NCBI RefSeq assembly: GCF_001194135.2
Contig: NC_068989.1
Coordinates: forward strand, 82,057,504-82,121,503
Origin: Octopus bimaculoides
Lineage: Eukaryota
DNA: 64,000 nt
Direction of reading: 5' to 3'
Shown here: one piece after another, positions 13,870-58,049 of the stretch
How the letters are laid out: each line of letters begins with the position of its first letter
Numbering within the stretch: position 1 is the first letter of the stretch
The notes under the pieces: generated by a model
Seen by the model: the letters and a program-made list of their open reading frames with translations, nothing else
The model's database searches: none
What the model was told of the DNA's origin: nothing
Translations under genes and position numbers: made by a program

Positions 13870-14205
13870 GGGACAGAGAGTTAAATAGTATGGTATGATC
13901 GTAATGGTCCCATAATACCCATAATTAACCCACCCACCCATCAACCAACAAACCAGTGGTTATAGTAAGAGAGTTAGGTAGTGTTGTGGTGCTCCTATAG
14001 TACCCATTGTTAAACCAACCTACATACCCATGTCAACCAACAAATTGTATAGTAAGGGAGTTAGGTAGTGTGGATGTGGTGGTCCTATGTTACTCATAGT
14101 TAACCCATACGCATCAACGAATCAACAAGAGGTATAGTAAGAGGGTTAAGTGAGTGTAGTGGTGTGGTGGTAGTTCCATGTTACCCATGCTTTAACCTAC
14201 CAACA
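13870..14205. repeat. Diverged ~85-bp tandem repeat, about 4 units
   Basis: Recurrent tatagtaagagagttaggtagtg...ccat..ttaacc...caac. Confidence 0.7.
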
Positions 14206-14484
14206 ATGTAGAAATGTTGAAGTCATTTAGATAATTATCCGCTCTATTAGACAATAATTACATTTGATGATGGAATAATCACATCAACAACACCATAACC
14301 ACCACCAACACCACCACCACCACCACTACTACCACCACCAACAACAAAAACAACAACAACAACAACAAGTTATATGAAAGATTAAAGAACATTAGAGCAG
14401 ACAGGAAGTAAGACATAGTTCTGTTTTACTCTGCATTTGATTCACCAAACACCACCACCACCACCGCAATAATGGCACAGGCAT

Positions 14485-15088
14485 GACTGTGCGGTAAGAA
14501 TTTGTTTTCCAACGACATGGTTCTGAGTTCAGTTCCACTCTGTGGAACCTTGGGTAAGTGTCTTCTACCATAGCCTTAGGCCAACCAAAGCCTTGTAAGT
14601 GGATGGAAACTGATAGAAGCCTGTCTCACACACACACACCATCATCATCATCGTTTAACGTCCACTTTCCATGCTAGCATGGGTTGGACAATTTGACTGA
14701 GGACTGTTGAACTGGATGGCTGCACCAGGCTCCAATCTGATCTGGCAGAGTTTCTACAGCTGGATGCCCTTCCTAAATGCTCTGGTGCTGCCATTGATAA
14801 CAGTGGTCTTAGCTTTAAATAGTGTGAAAGCACTAAGAGATTTTGGAAACCAACTGATGAGAAAATCAGCTGCGAATGTTCCTTGTGTTGTGTTTTACTC
14901 TCCTTTTTCTGTCCGTTCTGTTTTCATCTATTTTTCCTCTCTCTACCTAACCTTTGAGATGTGTGTGTGTCCGTCCCCTTATGACTGTCTTCCACCACCA
15001 CTTGACAACTGGTGTTGGTATGTTTATATCCCCATCACTTAGCAGTTCAACATAAGCGAGTGACAGAATATACTCCAGGTGCTACAAC

Positions 15089-15127
<39 letters not shown>

Positions 15128-15215
15128 TCTGGGGTTGAATCGGCTGACTAAAATTCTTCAAGGTGGTGCCCCAGCATGGCTGCAGTTTAATGACTGAAAC
15201 AAGTAAAAGATAAAC
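14485..15215 (+). mobile_element. SINE family A split by an RTE-tail insertion (~14638-14780) and other sequence
   Basis: Head 14485-14625, body ~14960-15075, tail ~15128-15215. Confidence 0.65.
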
Positions 15216-16752
15216 AATGGTTTTATCAGCAACACCAATGCCCCCCCCCCCCACTATGTCAATCACCAACAGCACTATACTGATCCCACCCTTGTACTAC
15301 TAACAGCCAAGACCATTAATAATGTCTCTACTAATACCACTGTCAACTCTGCCACTAATAGCAGCAACAACATCAAAATAGTAATTCAAATTAGGTTTTA
15401 TCTCTTTAATAGAGTGCCTGTATTTTCTCCTTGCCTTCCAGAGTCCATGATTTACACCTACACACATATCTATTATAAAAACACATACATGTCTATTATA
15501 AGCACACACACACACACACACACACGTCTATTACAAGCACATGCACCCATTATAAACACACACACATACAAGTGTATCTATTACAAACACACACACACAC
15601 ATATCTGTTACAAACACACATATCTATTATAAACACATGCACATATCGGTTACACACGCATATAGAGCTCTATTACAAACACATCTACACATACATATAC
15701 AACTACAATTACAGACATACACACACATACAACACTATCACATCTACACATATTCAAGTCCACAGACACCACACACACACACACACACACACACGTACAC
15801 TGCATTGATCGAGTGAAACCTGATATTAAAACAATATATTTTGTCAATATTAGTTTGCTCCTCTCTGACCCTTAGTGTATCTCAGAGATCAACACCTTCA
15901 CTCAACCACACCTCCACTCAACCACACCTCCACTTCCCTCACCCACAGCCCATTCCACACACTTCCCAAGGCTACTAAGGAGCTGGGTGCAGTACAGGGC
16001 TATTTTGAAATCAAACGAACCCTCCCAATTAATTTTGATCTCATTAAAGACACTGTTTAATTCTGTCAGTCATTTGTGGCCGAAGACAGTTAATTAGGAT
16101 CTGTGTTGGATTTACTTGAGTTAAAGGTGGCCCATAGAAAAAAGTTAGTGGGAGGGATCTCCTGAAGAGAAGGATTGGTAAGACATCATAATTATCATTG
16201 AAATATGTGTTTAGAAGAGATATGGACCCAACCGGATGTATTAAGTATAAGGTAAACAAGAATGTTTAAACATTACGTATATAAAGAGTAGAACTACTAT
16301 ATCATGTTCATCAATACAAAACCCCAAATATCCAACCTCGTAATCAAGGCCAAGATTGAACACAGGGTATTCTACAACAAAGTACAGGGAGTATTAACTC
16401 TATCAAGGTTAGTGTTTTTTTCAATTTACAGTATCACACTAACACATGCACTCACATTTACACACACACAAGCTGATACCAACCCTGCTTTGTCCAGTGT
16501 CACCCCTCATTAAACTAAACTAAGTTCACTTATTTTTCTCCACCAAATAGTCCACTACAAATGTCATTGTGGTATTATATGGTTGACCACTGTCCATTAA
16601 AACTGTCATTAAGGTATTACCTAGTTGGTTACTCACCTTATGCCAGTTTCTTACCATCTTAGCAACCTGTCCCTCTCTTCTAAGGAAAGATTGTCTTTGT
16701 CAGCCAGGATGTCTCTAAACTGGGCAATGGGTTATGTCTAACCCACAAGTTG

Positions 16753-16975
16753 AGGTGGATAGCTTAGTGGTTAGGGTGTGGGACTCGATCGCAAAATTGT
16801 GGTTTTGATTCCTGGATTGGCTGATGCAGTGAGTTCTTGAGCAAGACACTTCATTTCACGTTGCTCCAGTTCACTCAGCTGAGTAATACTGCGATGGTCA
16901 GGCATTCCGTCCAAGGATGAGGGGGGTGGTAAGGATATAAGCACCATGAAAACTGGGAGACTGGCCCTACGAGCA
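16753..16975 (+). mobile_element. Third tRNA-derived SINE type with a CORE/V-like central domain
   Basis: agcttagtggttagggt head, ttcttgagcaagacacttcatttcacgttgctccagttcactcagctg, ctgcgatgg...ccatgaaaactgggagactggccc; the same tail appears at 1-75. Confidence 0.65.
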
Positions 16976-17194
16976 CTAACATAGAGTGTGTGCCACCTGG
17001 GGGCAGCCCTTTAGTTTGCTGCCTCCGGACCCCTACAAAAAATACATATTGCCTACAGCAGACAGAAAAGTGATGTGGCCCCCCCCCACCATAAAAGTGC
17101 TGCCTGGGGTGAACTGCCCCCTCTAGCTACGCTAGTGACAGTGAGTCTCTATGACTTAGGAAGGATGTTTATCGTATTTTATCTCTCCTATCTA

Positions 17195-17405
17195 CCACCC
17201 AGGAACTCAGACAGCAAAGGGTGAGAACAAATACCACAAAACATCTTATCTGACATGCAAACGGTTATACCAATTTAGGCTTGCACTTTTACAAATGGTG
17301 AACAGTGAAGTTGACCTCAACAGGATCTGAACTCAGAGAAGAGAGGTCTGAAATAAAATAGCTCAATGCATTTTGTCTGATACACTAAAGACTGCCAGGC
17401 CATGC
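17195..17405 (-). mobile_element. Diverged family B SINE
   Basis: gaagttgacctcaacaggatctgaactcaga is the reverse complement of the B core. Confidence 0.6.
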
Positions 17406-18360
17406 CTGATGTTGTTGTTTAACTCCATCCCTGAACTAGCAGATTGAAGATCAAAGTTATTTTAGCTGTGACCGTCTCATCTGATATAAGAGTAGGTATA
17501 GCTATGTATGTGTTCTTTCCTTATTTAAGGCAGAAATATGAAATGATTTGACTGTGGTTGGTCTGAAGTGGGTTGTCGATGTCTGATAAAATATTGGACT
17601 AATTTATGAAGTGTATAGAAATACCAGTGGGTTTACCCTCAGATGGGTAATACATATACACTCACCCAAGCACATATACACAAACAAACACACACACGCG
17701 CCTACACACATATAATATAATGAATGAAGAAATAGGATATTAGTCAATATTCACAAGGCTTTTTATAGTTTGTGTGAATGCTTATGAGTATTTCTTTGCT
17801 TGTGTGTGTATGTGTGTGTGAGGAGAGAGAATATGTAAACTAATCAGAGATAGAGAGAGAAAGTAAGAGATAAACAGAGTGTGGGAGACTGTCTTCTGAT
17901 AGTCCACAGCTAAAAATCACAATAACAAAAGGGTATGATAATTATCGTTCAGATGAGGGACTGAACGTGGCTTTATTCAATCTAAAGTCTGAAGGTGAAG
18001 CTGATATCCTTCAAGTAATAAGTTCAATTTAAGGAAATCCGGGGTGAGGCCATCAGAATTATGGAAATGGTGTTGAGTGGAGCGGCCGAGCAATTTAGTG
18101 ACATGTTAGATAGGGGAAAGGTCAAATTATCATACAGAAACTACTCCAATTAGTATTACGGCTGTTATCTAACAGTTCAACATGTAACAGTAATGTTAGG
18201 GGGAGGGGTTACAGTTGTAGCAGTCTGATGGCAAGAGAGGTCATATAGCTGATGTAGAGCTGTAATAAGGTTGCTGATAGGGTTTCAATTCCCAGCTGAG
18301 GGTATTTCACTGATAACAAATAAAATATGGAATATGGCAACTAAAATATCATGTTTATGC

Positions 18361-18782
18361 TGTAGGGAAGTGGTTATACACCATTAGGTGTACACCGCTT
18401 CCGTACATTAAATTTCTAGAAGAAACAACGGAACGCAGATTCTGAACAACATAACAATATTTATTTACAGTGGAATTCAGTCCACGCTTGGAGGGAATTC
18501 GGTAGCTCGTCGCCCTCGGTTACTGAGACGCCTCCTGAATGATTTCCGTGGTTATTTGTGAAGCTCTGGTGCTGACATGTGAGAGAGCTCTGTTGGACGT
18601 CTTGGCTCGACGGAGATCAGTCAACGAAGAGACTGAGAAAAGGCGCCAAAGCTGGGTGTCGAACTCTACGCATGCGCATGAGACTCTTCCTGTATTCCTT
18701 CCGGACTTAGTCCCTGCGCATGCGTGGATAAAACTCCGGACATTGAACATATAACAGTCGTCTGCTATAAGATGTCACTACA
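18361..18782 (-). mobile_element. Solo LTR (Gypsy-like), 422 bp
   Basis: TGTAG...CTACA termini; exact 4-bp TSD ATGC (18357-18360 and 18783-18786); CpG-rich; AATAAA on the minus strand near 18460. Confidence 0.8.
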
Positions 18783-19366
18783 ATGCAATGAATGCTACTG
18801 GGGAACAACTATGTCATTCATTCCTCAAGAGTTGATAAAGTAAAGTACCAGTCATATACTGGAGTTGATTAAATCCAGCACACTCTTTCTCCAGATTTGT
18901 GACCTTTTGCCAATGTTAGAACCATTAGTGATTTTCAACATAGCAACAAGGACACAAGTTTTGTGAGAAAGGGTTAGTGGATTACATCACCCTTCGTACA
19001 TGACTGGTACTTATGTATGTACATACAGACACACACATACATATACATACACATGTACATATATATTTGGCTTGAACAGATGAGAGGCTCATAAGTGGAA
19101 CACCATTGCTCATAGGTACGCTGGCTCAGAACTGACCAAGAGACAAACAATGACACAGCGTAACTCATAATCATCGTCATCATTTTTACATTTGCTTTCC
19201 ATGATGGCATGGTTTAGGCAGTTAGACAAGGTCCCTAAAGATTGCAGGAACCACATCTTACTCCAGTGTCACAGATTTCGTATGGTTTCTATGGCTGGAT
19301 GTCATTCCTAATGTCAACCACTTAACAGAATATGCTGGGTACTCAAACTCAGGTGAGTGAACTCAC

Positions 19367-19514
19367 CTGAGTTTGAGAAATGGTGGAAGACTCTGGAGGG
19401 TAGACTATGAAGTGACGTAATGTAAATCCAAAACCAGCCTCTGTGCGGGGCACTATCTCTGTAAGGGGGGGCCCTGACCATGATCTAAGTACTGATTGGG
19501 TTGACCCCGTCAAC
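19367..19514 (-). pseudogene. Duplicated, frameshifted copy of the ARHGAP21/23 PDZ exon (pseudo-exon or candidate poison exon)
   Basis: 19354-19562 aligns to 20812-21049 with 7 substitutions, a 3-nt insertion and a 32-nt deletion. Both splice sites are retained. The 148-nt exon reads VDGVNPIST* from the ancestral acceptor. Confidence 0.9.
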
Positions 19515-19563
19515 CTGTAATGAAACATGCAATTTCTCAGTAAAAGATAACAAACACGGATTT

Positions 19564-19795
19564 AGGCAACAAGATGGCAGAAGCGTTAGCACGCCGGGTG
19601 AAATGCTTAGCGGCATTTCGTCTGCCCTTACGTTCTGAGTTCAAATTCTGCAGAGGTCGACTTTGCCTTTCATCCTTTCGGGGTCGATAAATTAAGTACC
19701 AGTTACGCACTGGGGTCAATGTAATCGACTTAATTCCTTTGTCTGTCCTTGTTTGTCCTCTCTATGTTTAGCCCCTTGAGGGCAATAAAGAAATA
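19564..19795 (+). mobile_element. Full-length tRNA-derived SINE (family B) co-inserted with the exon copy
   Basis: Head aggcaacaagatggcagaagcgttagc, B-box-like gagttcaaattc, body gtcgactttgcctttcatcctttcggggtcgataaattaagtaccag, tail ggcaataaagaaataa; right TSD at 19796-19812. Confidence 0.9.
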
Positions 19796-20824
19796 AGAAT
19801 ATGTTGGGTACTTTCTCATGCTTCTTTCTTTGCAGCAACACCAAGTGCAAATACACCATTATCCAGTCATACATACTTCTCACCCACAATGTCTTGTATC
19901 AATGTTCTATGATATATTCTATCCTCATATCATAGAACATTGGTAAATCTCTCATATTCTGTTGCAACCTTTGTTGAGTAAACCTGTCACCTAAATTCCC
20001 TTCTAGCTGCCCAGTACAATTCACTGCACCCCTATTTTTCAAGTTTTTCCAAGCCTGTGTCTCTGTTGCTAAATATCTGTCCATTTTACTGTTGCATACC
20101 CACACCACCTTTGATCTGGATGGAAACCTTGCACCAGCCATAGACTTGAAGTCTTATCTGGCCTGTTTGGCCACCAGATCAATAGGGGATCAGATGGTTT
20201 TCTCAGGCTAATGTTGCATATAACTAAGTCATTAGCATCAGAGACCTCCAGCAGCTTTGTTCCCTCCTCATTCCTAGAGCCAAAGTCTTTATACACACCA
20301 TGAAATCCATCAAAGTGCTGCCCAGCTTGTCAGTCGAAATAACCAGCCATGGTGATAAAGTTATCATCATTCATTATCAAGGTAAGAGGGCCACATAGAA
20401 TTGGGCTTTCTCTTCATCTGCCAGTTCTAATTGTGAAATATAGGCAGAGGTAAATGTTGTAGTCACATTAACCAAGACTAGTTTAAGCTTCGTTATCCTA
20501 TCACAATCTCTGACTACCTCAATCATTTTATCTACCTGTTTCTCAACTAATAGTATGCTTACTACACCCACACTATCACTACTGCTTAAACAAAAAATTT
20601 ATATCTTTTGTTCCTGGTCCATGAGGAATCTGGTAGAGGCTCCCCTCCATCTTCCCTCTTGCACACAGTACACATCCACATGTAGCTATTCTAGCATTTC
20701 AACAATTTCTCCAAGCCTGTATATTAACAAAGAAAAACAAAAGACAAACCAAAAAAAAACAAAAAAACATAAAAACAAAAAAAATAATTTGTCATTAATA
20801 AAAGTAGAAATTGAGTGAACTCAC

Positions 20825-21001
20825 CTGAGTTTGAGAAATGGTGGAAGATTCTGGAGGGTAGACTATGAAGTGACGTAATGTAAATCCAAAACCAGCCTCT
20901 GTGCGGGGCACTATCACTGTATGGGGCCCTGACCATGATGTAAGTACACTGGAGGTAGTAGTAGCACTATTACTACTACTGATTGGGTTGTCCCCATCAA
21001 C
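20825..21001 (-). CDS. ARHGAP21: Internal coding exon of an ARHGAP21/ARHGAP23-family Rho GTPase-activating protein (N-terminal part of PDZ domain)
   Basis: Minus strand: acceptor tttcattacAG (AG 21003-21002), donor CAG|gtgagt (from 20824); 177 nt, phase 0-0. Translates [75 protein letters not shown] is the characteristic ARHGAP21/23 PDZ carboxylate-binding-loop segment. ARHGAP21 versus 23 cannot be separated in an invertebrate. Confidence 0.9.
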
Positions 21002-21169
21002 CTGTAATGAAACATACAATTTCTCAGTAAAAGATAACAAACACGGATTAAGTTGAATGTTTTTGTCAGTTAATCCACTTCACATTGCAAAGGGGTGAGG
21101 GATAGGTTCCTCACATCTCATAATATCACTGGTGAAGGAGGGTGGTCTAAACATTCTTTGGTGGTGAAC

Positions 21170-21730
21170 GTAATGGTGAGTGATGGTGGTGGTGGTGGTG
21201 GTGATGGAGTTGATAGTGGTATTGGTGGTAGTGGTATTGGTGGTAGTGCTAATGATGGGTAGTGGCGACGGTGTTGATAGTGGTAGTGGTGTTGGTGGTA
21301 ATGCTACTGACGGGTGGTGGTGATGGTGTTGATAGTGGTAGTGGTGTTGGTGGTAGTGCTAATGATGGGCGGTGGTGATGGTAGTATTAATGGGGGGGGG
21401 GTTGTGGTTTTGGTGGATGGTGTTGATATTGCTGGTGGTAGTACTGTTTGTGGGTGGTGCTGGATGCAGTGGTTTTGGGTAGTGTTGGTACTGACAGATA
21501 ATGTTGGCATTGATGCTAGTGGTGCTGAGTGATGGTGGTAGTGTGTTAATGGTGGTGGTGGTGATGTTTGGTGGTTGTGGTAATGGTGGAATTTGTGGTG
21601 GTGGGGAGGGTATTAACGATAATGGTGGTGATGAGCTATTTATTGGCAATTGCAGGGGTAGTAGCATAGTGATGTTAATGACAGCGTTGGTGGTGATGGA
21701 GTTGGTATTGGTGGGAGAATCCATGCATGA
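21170..21730. repeat. (GGT/GTA/GAT)n low-complexity tract
   Basis: Degenerate trinucleotide repeats; similar tracts at 23390-23960 and 45830-46090. Confidence 0.9.
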
Positions 21731-22406
21731 TTAGGGGTTAATAGTCAACAAGTAATAGAATATAATGGCTGTCTACCCTCTGCAGTTTGCTCCACTCCCC
21801 AATCATATTTCTTCTTTCTCTCATCACCTTCTCACACTCTCAACTGATGCATGACACAATTCACTCTCCACCCTGATCCAATCCTTCTTCCCCCACACCA
21901 TCCATCCAGCTCTAGCCGGTAGCTGCCCACCCTCACTCCCCAACCTCAGTGTCATCAGTAAAAGTCATGGGCACTGCCCCACCCTCACTCTATGATCTTC
22001 AGTAAGAACAAATTTATCAAGAAGGTCGTGAGGGGAAAGGCTATAGTAGATAAGAGTGCCACCACTATGGTTATGATAAGAAATTTGCTTTGTAATCAAG
22101 TGGTGCCAGGTACATTCTCACTGCACATTACCTTGGGTAAGCAATTCCGATCATCATCTGACACACATACACATCATCATCATTATTTAACGTCCATGTT
22201 TCATGCTGACATGGGTTAGATGATTTGACAGGACCTGATGGGCCCAAGGACACCATTGTGTTCCAGTGTCTGCTTTGGCATGGCCTCTACAGCTGGATGC
22301 CATTTCTAACATCAAACACATACACACACACACGCGCAATAGGCTTAGACTCTTGTTTTAGTCCCACATTGTTCTGGTAAGTGTGTGTGTGTGTGTGTGT
22401 ATATGC

Positions 22407-22434
<28 letters not shown>

Positions 22435-22437
<3 letters not shown>

Positions 22438-22580
22438 CCAGCGACGCCTGCTGGGTTCGGCTGCTCTACATTGATAAAAGGCAAACACCCTGAAACTAGT
22501 CTGTAGACGCCAGACCAGCAAGGAGAAGCGGCTGACCTTCCCTGTTCGAAGGTTATAATGGACACAGGTTCGTGTGTCAC
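22435..22580 (+). mobile_element. Penelope-like element terminal-repeat fragment with a degenerate minimal hammerhead ribozyme
   Basis: 22466-22506 reads ctaca-TTGATAA-aaggcaaacaccct-GAAAC-ta-GTC-tgtag: stem I ctaca/tgtag, palindromic stem III actagt, GUC triplet; the core deviates from CUGAUGA. Confidence 0.65.
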
Positions 22581-23096
22581 ATAGCTAGCTAGTAAGGCAA
22601 TGGCCTCTTGGAGATAATCAACGGCAGCATTTGTCCTATTTTTTGGTCTGCCATGTTGGCTTGGCGATAACTATTAATATATATATATATATATATAATT
22701 ATTACAAAATACATGGGAACAGTGAGTTAACAATAGCAACTGTAACAGTTTGTTGAGCTAGTTGTATGACCAAATTAAACTCTACCAATCTGGTATTGAA
22801 TGCTCTGGTCCCTCATATATGTTACTCTTGCATGCTTTATGATTTTGGCATGTGTTTTGTATGTGTTTTGTATGTATTTTGTATGTGTGTGTGTTATATA
22901 TCTTTTACAAATGTATGTGTAGTGTACAAAGGTGAAGAATGTAAATGGCAGCATAAAAAAACTGAATATGTAGCATACTTCTTAATAAAGTTCTCTGTAA
23001 TATTTGTTCTGCAACATATTACAGACACTCCCTTACTACTCTCTCATGAGAAATGCTGTGAACCAGTGACTGACCAATCAGAAACCTGGGGTCAGT

Positions 23097-23335
23097 GATG
23101 GTGGGCTGGAGTCACTGATGGTGGGTTGGAGTCACTGATGGTGGTTTGGAGTCACTGATGGTGGTTTGGAGTCACTGATGGTGGGCTGGAGTCACTGATG
23201 GTNNNNNNNNNNATGGTGGTTTGGAGTCACTGATGGTGGTTTGGAGTCACTGATGGTGGGCTGGAGTCACTGATGGTGGGCTGGAGTCACTGATGGTGGG
23301 CTGGAGTCACTGATGGTGGGCTGGAGTCACTGATT
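23097..23335. repeat. 20-bp minisatellite (gatggtgggctggagtcact), about 12 units
   Basis: Directly visible tandem units with ggc/ggt/gtt variants; 10-N gap inside. Confidence 0.95.
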
Positions 23336-30496: not shown

Positions 30497-30945
30497 AGGT
30501 ACCAAGCTGGCAGAAATGTTAGCATGCCAGGCGAAATGCTTAGCGGTATTTTGCTTGTCTTTACATTCTGAGTTCAAATTCCGCCAAGGTCGACACTGCC
30601 TTTCTTCCTTTCAGGGTCAATAAATTAAGTACCATTTGCATACTGGGGTTGATCTAATCGACTGGCCCCCACCTACCCAGAAATTTTGGGCCTTGTGCCT
30701 ATAGTAGAAAAGATTATTATTATTATTAAGGTGGTGAGCTGGCAGAATCATTCACATGCTAGGTGAAATACTTGGCAGTATTTTGTGTGTTTTCACATTC
30801 TGAGTTCAAATTCTACTGAAATCGACTTTGCCTTTCGTCCTTTCAGAGTTAATAAAATAACTACTAATTGAACACTGGGGTTGATGTAATCAACTAGTCT
30901 CCTCTCGCAAAATTTCAGGCCTTCTGCCTTTAGTAGAAAGGATTA
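30497..30945 (+). mobile_element. Head-to-tail pair of family B SINEs separated by (TTA)n
   Basis: Two aagg...agctggcagaa heads with complete bodies. Confidence 0.85.
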
Positions 30946-42639: not shown

Positions 42640-43130
42640 CATCATCATCATCATCATCATCGTTTAACGTCCGCTTTCCATGCTAGCATGGGTTGGACGA
42701 TTTGACTGAGGACTGGTGAAACCGGATGGCAACACCAGGCTCCAATCTAAATTTGGCAGAGTTTCTACAGCTGGATGCCCTTCCTAACGCCTATGTATAC
42801 ACACATACATATTTACATATCATGTTTGTGTGTATACACTTATATCTATCTATCTATCTATCTATCTATCGTAAGATAGATAGATTGATATAAATATATC
42901 ATCATCATCATCATTTAATGTCCATGTTGGTATGAGTTTGACAGAACCCAATGGGTCTAAGGACTGCATTGCAGTCCAGTGTTTGCTTTGGTATAGATTC
43001 TACAACTGGATGCCCTTCTTAATGTCAACCAATTTACAATGTGAACTGCGTAAATTGTTTTATGCCACTGAGGTGACCAAGTCGCTCACACATCTACAAA
43101 ACCTGTGGAGTAGGAAGTGAGATGGGGTAT
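42640..43130 (-). mobile_element. Two RTE-type 3'-tail elements with (CAT)n tails
   Basis: catcatcgtttaacgtccgctttccatgctagcatgggttggacg...ctggatgcccttcctaa. Similar tails lie at ~3130-3325, 14638-14780, 22160-22310, 47965-48050, 49790-49900 and 53960-54260. Confidence 0.75.
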
Positions 43131-57473: not shown

Positions 57474-57697
57474 CCCTTTCGTTGCTGTATTTTTATTTTT
57501 TGATGCTCTGTGTTTCTTTCAATTAATTTTAAATATAATAAATAATTTAGTAAAATAACTTAGTTATCATTAAGCTGGTGTTAGAAACATAAATTGTGAC
57601 TAAGATTTGGTGGAAGATTTTAATTGAAAACTTATAAAAACAAAACATTTGTACTACAGAGCTAAAGCCGGTTTCAGCCAGGTTAGTATCAAAAGGG
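57474..57697. mobile_element. piggyBac-like MITE copy 1
   Basis: TTAA|ccctttcgttgct ... agtatcaaaaggg|TTAA. Confidence 0.8.
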
Positions 57698-57716
57698 TTA
57701 ATTAATCATTTGTTAA

Positions 57717-57938
57717 CCTTTTTGTTACCATATTTCTGTTGAGATGTTCTGTGTTTCTTTCAATTAATTTTAAATATAACAAAGAATTTAGTAAAATAAC
57801 TTAGTTATCATTAAGCTGGTGTTAGAAACATAAATTGCAACTAAGGTTTGGTGGAAGATTTTAATTCAAAACTTATGTAAACAAGACATTTATACTATAA
57901 AGCCAGAGCCGGTTTCAACCGGCTTGGTATCAAAAGGG
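57717..57938. mobile_element. piggyBac-like MITE copy 2 (same family as copy 1)
   Basis: TTAA|cctttttgttacc ... ggtatcaaaaggg|TTAA; colinear with 57474-57697. Confidence 0.8.
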
Positions 57939-58049
57939 TTAAGGATTAAGAACAGCAAAAAAAAATCCTGAAATAATAAACAATGTGATGAGTAACAGTT
58001 TAGTGTGTTACCTTACAGGTAACTGATATTCCAGCAACACAGAAGGCAA

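Follow-up and report, generated by a model that had tools for sequence, protein, structure and literature searches.

In human cells, the ends of insertions made by L1 target-primed reverse transcription (TPRT) carry templated insertions, hairpins of self-annealed complementary DNA (cDNA), and products of template-switching reverse transcription (PMC11702581). Template jumping and microhomology-mediated end joining (MMEJ) have both been offered as models for the attachment of the 5' end (PMC2912911), and DNA polymerase theta (Pol theta), as far as the reactions treated in PMC4912351 go, performs snap-back and in-trans templated extension. Retrotransposition mechanics are unstudied in cephalopods. 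We analyzed a 64,000-nucleotide (nt) stretch of Octopus bimaculoides (contig NC_068989.1 of GCF_001194135.2, positions 82,057,504 to 82,121,503), hereafter the window, whose own numbering is used throughout. Within it, a short interspersed nuclear element (SINE) is enclosed by one pair of direct repeats together with a fold-back and a copy of a nearby exon from an ARHGAP21-type gene. The locus resembles the junctions above in its extra templated synthesis, self-annealing, and microhomology joining, and it differs from them in what was copied.

Structure of the insertion

The insertion is bracketed by a 17-nt direct repeat, AGAATATGCTGGGTACT at 19327-19343 on the left and AGAATATGTTGGGTACT at 19796-19812 on the right, identical at 16 of 17 positions. 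Inside it lie, from left to right, a 12-nt fold-back, a 209-nt exon copy, and a 232-nt SINE, which is the layout that the first-pass annotation of this DNA had described. That annotation had also named frequent recurrence of the 17-mer in RTE tails as a sign that the target-site duplication (TSD) was coincidental; the 64-kb window contains just these two matches, even with up to three mismatches allowed. By our own arithmetic, the chance expectation for the 17 nt located 3' of the SINE to recur with at most one mismatch within 500 nt upstream is about 1.5e-6. The duplication may be 13-17 nt long because a sister SINE copy at 10542 also precedes AGAAG, and the first AGAA may belong to the SINE 3' end or represent priming microhomology.

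The right duplication abuts the 3' end (...GGGCAATAAAGAAATA) of a full-length SINE on the plus strand (19564-19795), assigned earlier to a "family B". Nine other relatives, partial or full, were found in the window, giving ten matches to a dispersed family with defined ends; the nearest relative (10766-10542, minus strand, 90.7% identity) has the same 3' end. The earlier call of a full-length element is upheld by its 5' start, which matches three other full-length copies. These three begin ...TA|AGG(C/T), the focal copy reads ...TT|AGGC, and the source of the exon copy continues GGATT|AAGTTG. One ambiguous T separates the exon copy from the SINE, and the junction reads GGATTTAGGC. The microhomology previously noted at this join is present as a 3-5-nt overlap (TTAAG/TAAG/AAG), but one mismatch is needed, as both parents have A where the junction has T (TTTAG). 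No tRNA was found in the SINE head by ARAGORN, and no Rfam tRNA match was obtained at E <= 1; Box A/B-like motifs were seen by eye.

Some further observations concern the SINE family. The sister copy at 10542-10766 (minus strand) is 5'-truncated by about 8 nt, nested in a different SINE (ggcgtggctgcgtggtcagaag|...|aagcttgcttcccagccacatgg), and flanked by a duplication of just about 5 nt, AGAAG. The two insertions of this subfamily are each followed by AGAA, which may point to a preference in targeting or priming. Related SINEs also stand head-to-tail at 934-1324 and 30497-30895 (plus strand), where the (ATT)n tail of one SINE is immediately followed by the start of the next. This arrangement suggests that SINE tails already in place can receive new insertions or prime them.

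The copied source segment (20812-21049, plus strand) starts 1,000 nt beyond the right duplication and comprises, as had been reported, one whole PDZ exon flanked by 48 nt of intron upstream and 13 nt downstream. This authentic exon is located at 20825-21001 on the minus strand, is 177 nt long with phase 0-0, and is bounded by a ...tttcattacag| acceptor and a |gtgagt donor. It encodes VDGDNP..., the start of an ARHGAP21-type PDZ domain, and its product matched the N-terminal PDZ strands of human ARHGAP21 (PDB 2YUY, E = 3e-10, residues 22-53). The Pfam PDZ family was not detected when the 59-residue exon fragment was searched alone, and a tblastn search of the window for the second half of the domain, with an ARHGAP21 segment as query, gave no match. 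No RhoGAP-domain exon was found in the window, where no search aimed at one was made.

Orthologous exon-sized matches were obtained in a distant cephalopod contig (L001, protein P0001, 72% amino acid identity) and in many other animals, and the cephalopod contig has one copy of the exon within +/-10 kb. The authentic exon is unbroken, and its conservation in that contig and in other animals establishes that copying ran from the authentic exon to the copy. Two side observations concern the neighborhood of the source. A T5 run at 21060-21064 (plus strand), about 10 nt past the copied segment, would be a stop of the RNA polymerase III (Pol III) type if a plus-strand small RNA existed; no promoter was seen. 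In the upstream intron, a degenerate GGT/GGTGAT-rich minisatellite (ACC-rich on the gene strand) of about 570 nt occupies 21150-21720 (plus strand), with some 100 nt between it and the copied segment.

The copy itself occupies 19354-19562 on the plus strand and is one of two copies of the exon sequence in the window. It differs from its source by seven substitutions in 206 aligned nt (3.4%), by a 32-nt deletion whose ends share TAC, and by three additional G in a run that grew from G4 to G7 with an adjacent T>A, for a net loss of 29 nt. The longest exact runs common to both reach 66 nt. The homology stops sharply at both ends, and the flanks of the copy do not continue those of the source; a haplotig or segmental duplication was rejected for these reasons.

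To the left of the copy, the 12-nt fold-back CTCAAACTCAGG (19342-19353, plus strand) is the exact reverse complement of 19366-19377 and overlaps the left repeat by CT, the last 2 nt of that repeat. Together with TGAGT-GA-ACTCA, it forms a 100% complementary inverted repeat at 19342-19377, a hairpin whose 17-nt arms are separated by a 2-nt spacer. In the source, the palindrome TGAGTGAACTCA was present beforehand at 20812-20823, where it is made by the GTGAGT donor and where the homology ends. This agrees with the snap-back on a tgagt/actca palindrome that had been suggested, the fold-back completing the perfect 17-nt arms.

A probable single-event model

A single insertion, as the first-pass annotation had held, is by far the best reading of the sequence, given one TSD pair round all of the parts and a source 1 kb away in the same orientation. 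The divergences also fit a common age, with 3.4% between copy and source and one difference in 17 between the duplications. In the course that we consider probable, one retrotransposition took place, and the 5' end of its cDNA was finished by serial microhomology-primed synthesis and end joining, leaving filler DNA.

The SINE is plus-oriented, and therefore its first-strand cDNA would be minus-sense and grow leftwards from the right-hand target end. Extension of this strand needs a plus-sense template running from about 21049-21052 to 20812, which excludes the gene's own pre-mRNA. A pre-mRNA template was thus discarded on orientation, and a model with pre-mRNA used during second-strand synthesis leaves the fold-back unexplained without extra switches.

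Seven steps would account for the structure. In the first, SINE RNA would have been reverse-transcribed from a bottom-strand nick at AGAA|, as can be read from the locus because the SINE 3' end abuts the right duplication; in the second, synthesis would have reached the SINE 5' end, which is apparent because the SINE is full length. In the third step, which we infer, the nascent minus-strand 3' end would have re-primed on a plus-sense template 1 kb away, on the same chromosome arm, through TTAAG/TAAG microhomology. From there, 238 nt would have been copied leftwards through the exon, probably with one slip between TAC triplets that produced the 32-nt deletion. Dissociation just past the GTGAGT donor would then have left a nascent end ...TGAGTTCACTCA-3' able to snap back. 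In the sixth step, ACTCA would have paired with TGAGT at the nascent end ...GGTGAGTTCACTCA-3', and a 12-nt self-extension would have yielded ...CCTGAGTTTGAG-3'. Finally, the terminal AG would have paired with the CT-3' of the top-strand overhang, and fill-in would have made the 13-17-nt duplication.

This scheme reproduces the observed sequence base for base, and the corresponding empty allele would read ...CACTTAACAGAATATG(C/T)TGGGTACTTTCTCATGC, with a single 17-mer. Microhomology is present at all three junctions: CT (2 nt) at the target, TGAGT/ACTCA (5 nt) at the snap-back, and TTAAG (3-5 nt) at the SINE, in addition to the TAC at the internal deletion. Local genomic DNA, either the sister chromatid or an invaded duplex, is favored over an antisense RNA as the template, being held roughly twice as likely, because of the locality and the serial use of microhomology, including at the TAC-flanked deletion. 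As the 5-nt snap-back is unstable alone, a polymerase that tolerates minimal primers is needed. Both a host repair polymerase of the Pol theta type, acting by synthesis-dependent MMEJ (SD-MMEJ), and the retrotransposon reverse transcriptase, by template jumping and snap-back, are known to carry out each step, and the marks that they leave are alike. Of the mechanism proposed before, the SINE first and then a plus-sense template other than the mRNA, the retained introns, the snap-back, and the 2-nt CT join all stand; the extra copying, which it assigned to target-primed reverse transcription, may also be the work of the host polymerase.

Several points weigh against this model. The computed stability of the snap-back, 5 nt with a 2-nt loop, confirmed that it does not hold alone, and the SINE/exon microhomology contains its one mismatch. 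The filler of 209 nt is long, and atypical, for Pol theta inserts. Normal 5' resection removes the top strand of the same arm, and therefore a sister chromatid, a homologue, or a displacement loop (D-loop) is needed. The capture of exactly one whole exon has an estimated chance of about 1.5% for a random 238-nt segment within +/-2 kb, and it may hint at an exon-linked template beyond the model. The end point of the copied segment is explained by the donor-derived palindrome, and the start point by short microhomology alone.

The comparative evidence is a further point on this side. The simultaneity of the parts is inferred from the structure of the sequence, with no empty allele or orthologous site. 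The search for such a site found no contig for UPI00069521F3 (a deposited protein treated below), for the open reading frame (ORF) over the authentic exon, or for the ORF over the copy. Among metagenome contigs, a search for exact 32-mer matches came back with zero hits, and a protein-guided scan recovered distant animals only, at no more than 70% identity apart from partial matches of 14-25 residues. For P0001, the distant cephalopod contig L001 alone was recovered, and its introns were not alignable with the window. Lastly, the draft assembly has gaps and, at another place, at least one duplication that is probably artefactual.

Alternative explanations

The explanation closest to the single-event model, and the version given by the first-pass annotation, differs from it in enzyme and template only. 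Here, the reverse transcriptase would have jumped end-to-end from the 5' end of the SINE RNA to an antisense unspliced RNA of the exon region, and the product would then have self-primed. A full-length SINE is expected of an end-to-end jump, and the mismatch at the join fits a non-templated or misincorporated nucleotide. According to the R2 work covered in PMC2912911, non-LTR (non-long-terminal-repeat) enzymes jump between templates and add or use a few nucleotides of microhomology, and double template jumps leading to tripartite chimeras are among the cases in PMC2104539. However, no plus-strand transcript over 20812-21049 is known, and nothing at 21049-21052 looks like the signal of an RNA 3' end, the T5 run lying about 10 nt further on. 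In addition, the known chimeras mostly capture abundant nuclear RNAs from elsewhere, rather than sequence 1 kb away. We regard this course as possible, on the unlikely side.

A second alternative invokes two events: the SINE would have inserted with its 17-nt duplication, and the repair of a later break would have placed the fold-back and the exon copy between the duplication and the SINE. Templated insertions and fold-backs do occur at ordinary breaks without retrotransposons, as in the cases of PMC11724301 and PMC5068794. The second break, however, must have hit the exact junction nucleotide, sparing both the duplication and the SINE 5' end, and the SINE join shows microhomology with the SINE consensus start; with the filler placed first, the duplication would not bracket both parts. 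These demands make two events quite improbable.

The third alternative is an assembly artefact, in which reads of the authentic exon or of the other haplotype were mis-joined beside the SINE in a draft short-read assembly. The window contains 10 runs of N (at 5760, 8102, 23203, 24432, 31533, 38051, 41245, 44498, 48415, and 52456), a 149-nt duplicate of 95% identity flanks the gap at 5760-6327, and the exact runs between copy and source reach 66 nt. Nevertheless, the whole structure and its source are contained in one gap-free stretch of 15 kb (8181-23202). The seven private substitutions, the two indels, the sharp ends, the fold-back from a pre-existing palindrome, and the matching duplication all speak against a mis-join, and a divergence of 3.4% with a 32-nt coding deletion does not look allelic. 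We therefore hold an artefact at this locus to be very improbable. As for the 149-nt duplicate itself (5528-5676 and 6413-6561, across the 568-N gap), it is probably an assembly or haplotype artefact.

A mobile chimera, in which a SINE source copy elsewhere had acquired the exon segment as a 5' extension or by 5' transduction of its flank and the product landed here by chance, has parallels in the 5' transduction and exon trapping known for SVA and is barely credible here, since the sequence after 21049 is not a SINE, a chance landing 1 kb from the parent exon in a Gb-sized genome has a probability of about 1e-6, and the exon sequence is present in two copies in the window with one deposited protein carrying the frameshifted peptide. 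Plain 5' transduction was rejected as well, as the source continues ...GGATT|AAGTTGAATG with no SINE after 21049.

Fate of the exon copy

The first-pass annotation had suggested that local exon duplication by a SINE insertion would be an unusual route to tandem exons; the copy found here is not a functional tandem exon. The copy exon (19367-19514, minus strand) retains both splice sites unchanged, but in length it has 148 nt versus 177 nt, it is frameshifted, and a TAG interrupts the authentic frame, which reads VDGVNPIST*. Of five exonic substitutions, two are synonymous and three non-synonymous; two of the latter, V>E and D>V, arose in the copy, since at both sites the source agrees with the protein of the outgroup contig L001 (V and an acidic residue, respectively). 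A functional tandem exon would be expected to keep its length, frame, and ORF under purifying selection, and the copy, to judge by its changes, looks unconstrained.

The donor of the copy is also affected. In the pre-mRNA, CAG|GUGAGU forms the 5' arm of the new hairpin, for which the predicted energy on the minus-strand RNA is -27.6 kcal/mol (z = -6.7), compared with -4.2 kcal/mol for the equivalent span of the source. On these predictions, the hairpin would hinder U1 binding and mask the 5' splice site of the copy exon. The copy is thus a pseudo-exon in sense orientation within a downstream intron of its own gene, disabled by the frameshift, the stop, and the masked donor.

A protein search returned one deposited protein with the frameshifted peptide of the copy, the 72-residue P0002 (UniParc UPI00069521F3), and no deposited protein with the authentic exon. 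Over residues 1-49, it matches the copy, and not the source, at 100% identity when the DNA is read in the frame that the indels opened, and residues 49-72 are 100% identical to the translation of 16164-16093 (minus strand), which is followed by TAA. The protein begins exactly at the acceptor of the copy with a non-Met first residue, the copy being its first coding exon, and the gene model joins 19514-19367 to 16161-16093 at canonical sites. The exon joined to the copy's donor (16090-16161, minus strand) follows a ...ttctcttcag acceptor, comprises 23 codons closed by a TAA, and occurs only once in the window, 3.2 kb downstream of the copy; its acceptor at 16161 reads ccttctcttcag|GAGATC. Because the tblastn search with the ARHGAP21 segment gave no match there, it is not the canonical next PDZ exon. 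As a deposited gene model, UPI00069521F3 shows that the copy was taken for an exon by an annotation pipeline, and it does not count as transcript evidence. The predicted masking of the donor in the hairpin is at odds with a deposited model that uses that donor.

The interrupted host repeat

The insertion target (19170-19326) is an interspersed repeat whose minus strand carries a tail of the (GAT)n type; at least seven relatives of this repeat lie in the window. To the left of the insertion, it reads (ATC)n...CCATGCTGGCATGG...GCTGGATGCCCTTCCTAA... and is diverged. Two of its paralogs, at 42900-43057 and 3323-3163, run once through the region of the 17-mer, as uninterrupted sequence should, against the two occurrences of the 17-mer at the insertion; in sequence terms they offer a weak paralogous "empty site". 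A blastn and nhmmer search for empty sites within the window, with the joined flanks as query, recovered nothing but diverged paralogs of the left repeat, none of which aligned clearly past the 17-mer. The first-pass annotation had described the interrupted repeat as an RTE tail; this identity found no support in Pfam or PDB, and no partner LINE with the 3' tail of the SINE was identified, no search aimed at one having been made.

Broken ORF fragments on the minus strand at 19900-20700 (...VDVYCVQEGRWRG..., ...SAYISQLELADEEKAQFY..., and ...GSRNEEGTKLLEVSDANDLVICNISLRK...) resemble by eye the apurinic-type endonuclease of a long interspersed nuclear element (LINE). Neither the single ORFs nor their stitched translation gave a credible Pfam match, and no credible PDB match was obtained. 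If the endonuclease is real, endonuclease and 3' tail would lie within about 1 kb, hence the element would be internally deleted. Elsewhere in the window, unrelated tandem duplications were found at 57502-57942 (241-nt period, 90.5%) and at 23087-23334 (about 135-155 nt, 92-96%, round a 10-N gap).

Age and significance

In the octopus transposable element calibration, a Jukes-Cantor (JC) distance of 0.065 corresponds to about 18 million years (My), and the split of O. vulgaris and O. bimaculoides is dated to 13-33 My (PMC13282606). On this scale, the 3.4% divergence between copy and source would make the insertion about 5 My old if both copies drift, or up to about 10 My old if the copy alone does. 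This age is below that of the split, and therefore related species should carry the empty site.

The event is real and is a by-product of the sealing of such insertions, represented by one case with a disabled copy. It provides a clean natural record of how a non-LTR 5' end is sealed, by re-priming nearby, slippage, snap-back, and a 2-nt join. A single disabled copy probably has no immediate biological consequence, or a mildly harmful one by way of a cryptic exon or nonsense-mediated decay. If whole-exon fillers of this type were frequent, they would link the SINE and LINE expansions of cephalopods to exon duplication. A more far-reaching proposal is that, in SINE-dense cephalopod genomes, recurrent retrotransposition-coupled local templating sets sense-oriented exon copies, still competent for splicing, into the introns of the genes that they came from, with the UPI00069521F3 model reflecting a real transcript and the fold-back acting as a donor damper. 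We consider it improbable; were it true, SINE activity would feed tandem exon duplication and alternative splicing, and the damper would let the copies persist.

Comparison with known systems

The complex junctions of L1 TPRT are alike in that a cDNA 3' end received extra templated synthesis, self-annealed, and was joined by microhomology while a normal-sized TSD was kept. Unlike them, the present case is a germline-fixed cephalopod SINE whose filler is a 209-nt direct copy from 1 kb away; this filler comprises a complete exon, both splice sites included, and lies in the sense direction within the gene of origin. L1 twin priming with 5' inversion likewise leaves an inverted segment at the 5' end of a non-LTR insertion between TSDs, and microhomology marks the point of inversion. 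It was rejected for this locus, since the SINE is complete and uninverted and the inverted 12 nt derive from the exon copy.

Template-switch chimeras, such as the U6-L1 cases described in PMC4476161 and the Magnaporthe MINE/WEIRD elements described in PMC2104539, are head-to-tail fusions within one TSD pair, in which the 3' part is a retroelement and the 5' part was added once the 5' end of that retroelement had been reached. The octopus insertion shares this arrangement, with same-orientation parts in one duplication pair and the 5' part at the 5' end of the 3' part. In contrast, the 5' parts of the chimeras derive from abundant processed RNAs of unlinked loci, whereas the octopus 5' part retains 48 + 13 nt of intron, runs antisense to the one transcript that is known, and was copied from a site 1 kb away, so that a cellular-RNA origin would need an antisense RNA. 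The added snap-back inversion is another difference from the chimeras.

Pol theta end joining and SD-MMEJ, in the junctions presented in PMC4912351, PMC5068794, and PMC5728401, are alike in their iterative 2-5-nt priming, reverse-complement snap-back, and nearby template, as well as in the final 2-nt join of two 3' overhangs. In sequence terms, the locus shows the same signature, with microhomology at each junction, a nearby template, and a snap-back. Typical Pol theta inserts measure 3-30 nt, versus 209 + 12 nt here, and the break end here is a retrotransposon cDNA.

L1 3' transduction and SVA 5' transduction or exon trapping carry sequence that is contiguous with, or spliced to, the source transcript, and they take it to unlinked sites. 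Retroelement exon shuffling in general is alike in that an insertion takes host exon sequence to a new place; unlike it, the exon here adjoins no source element and was duplicated locally. The unusual part of the octopus insertion is its outcome: a long local filler that takes in an entire exon and its splice sites and lies, in the sense direction, in the gene that it was copied from.

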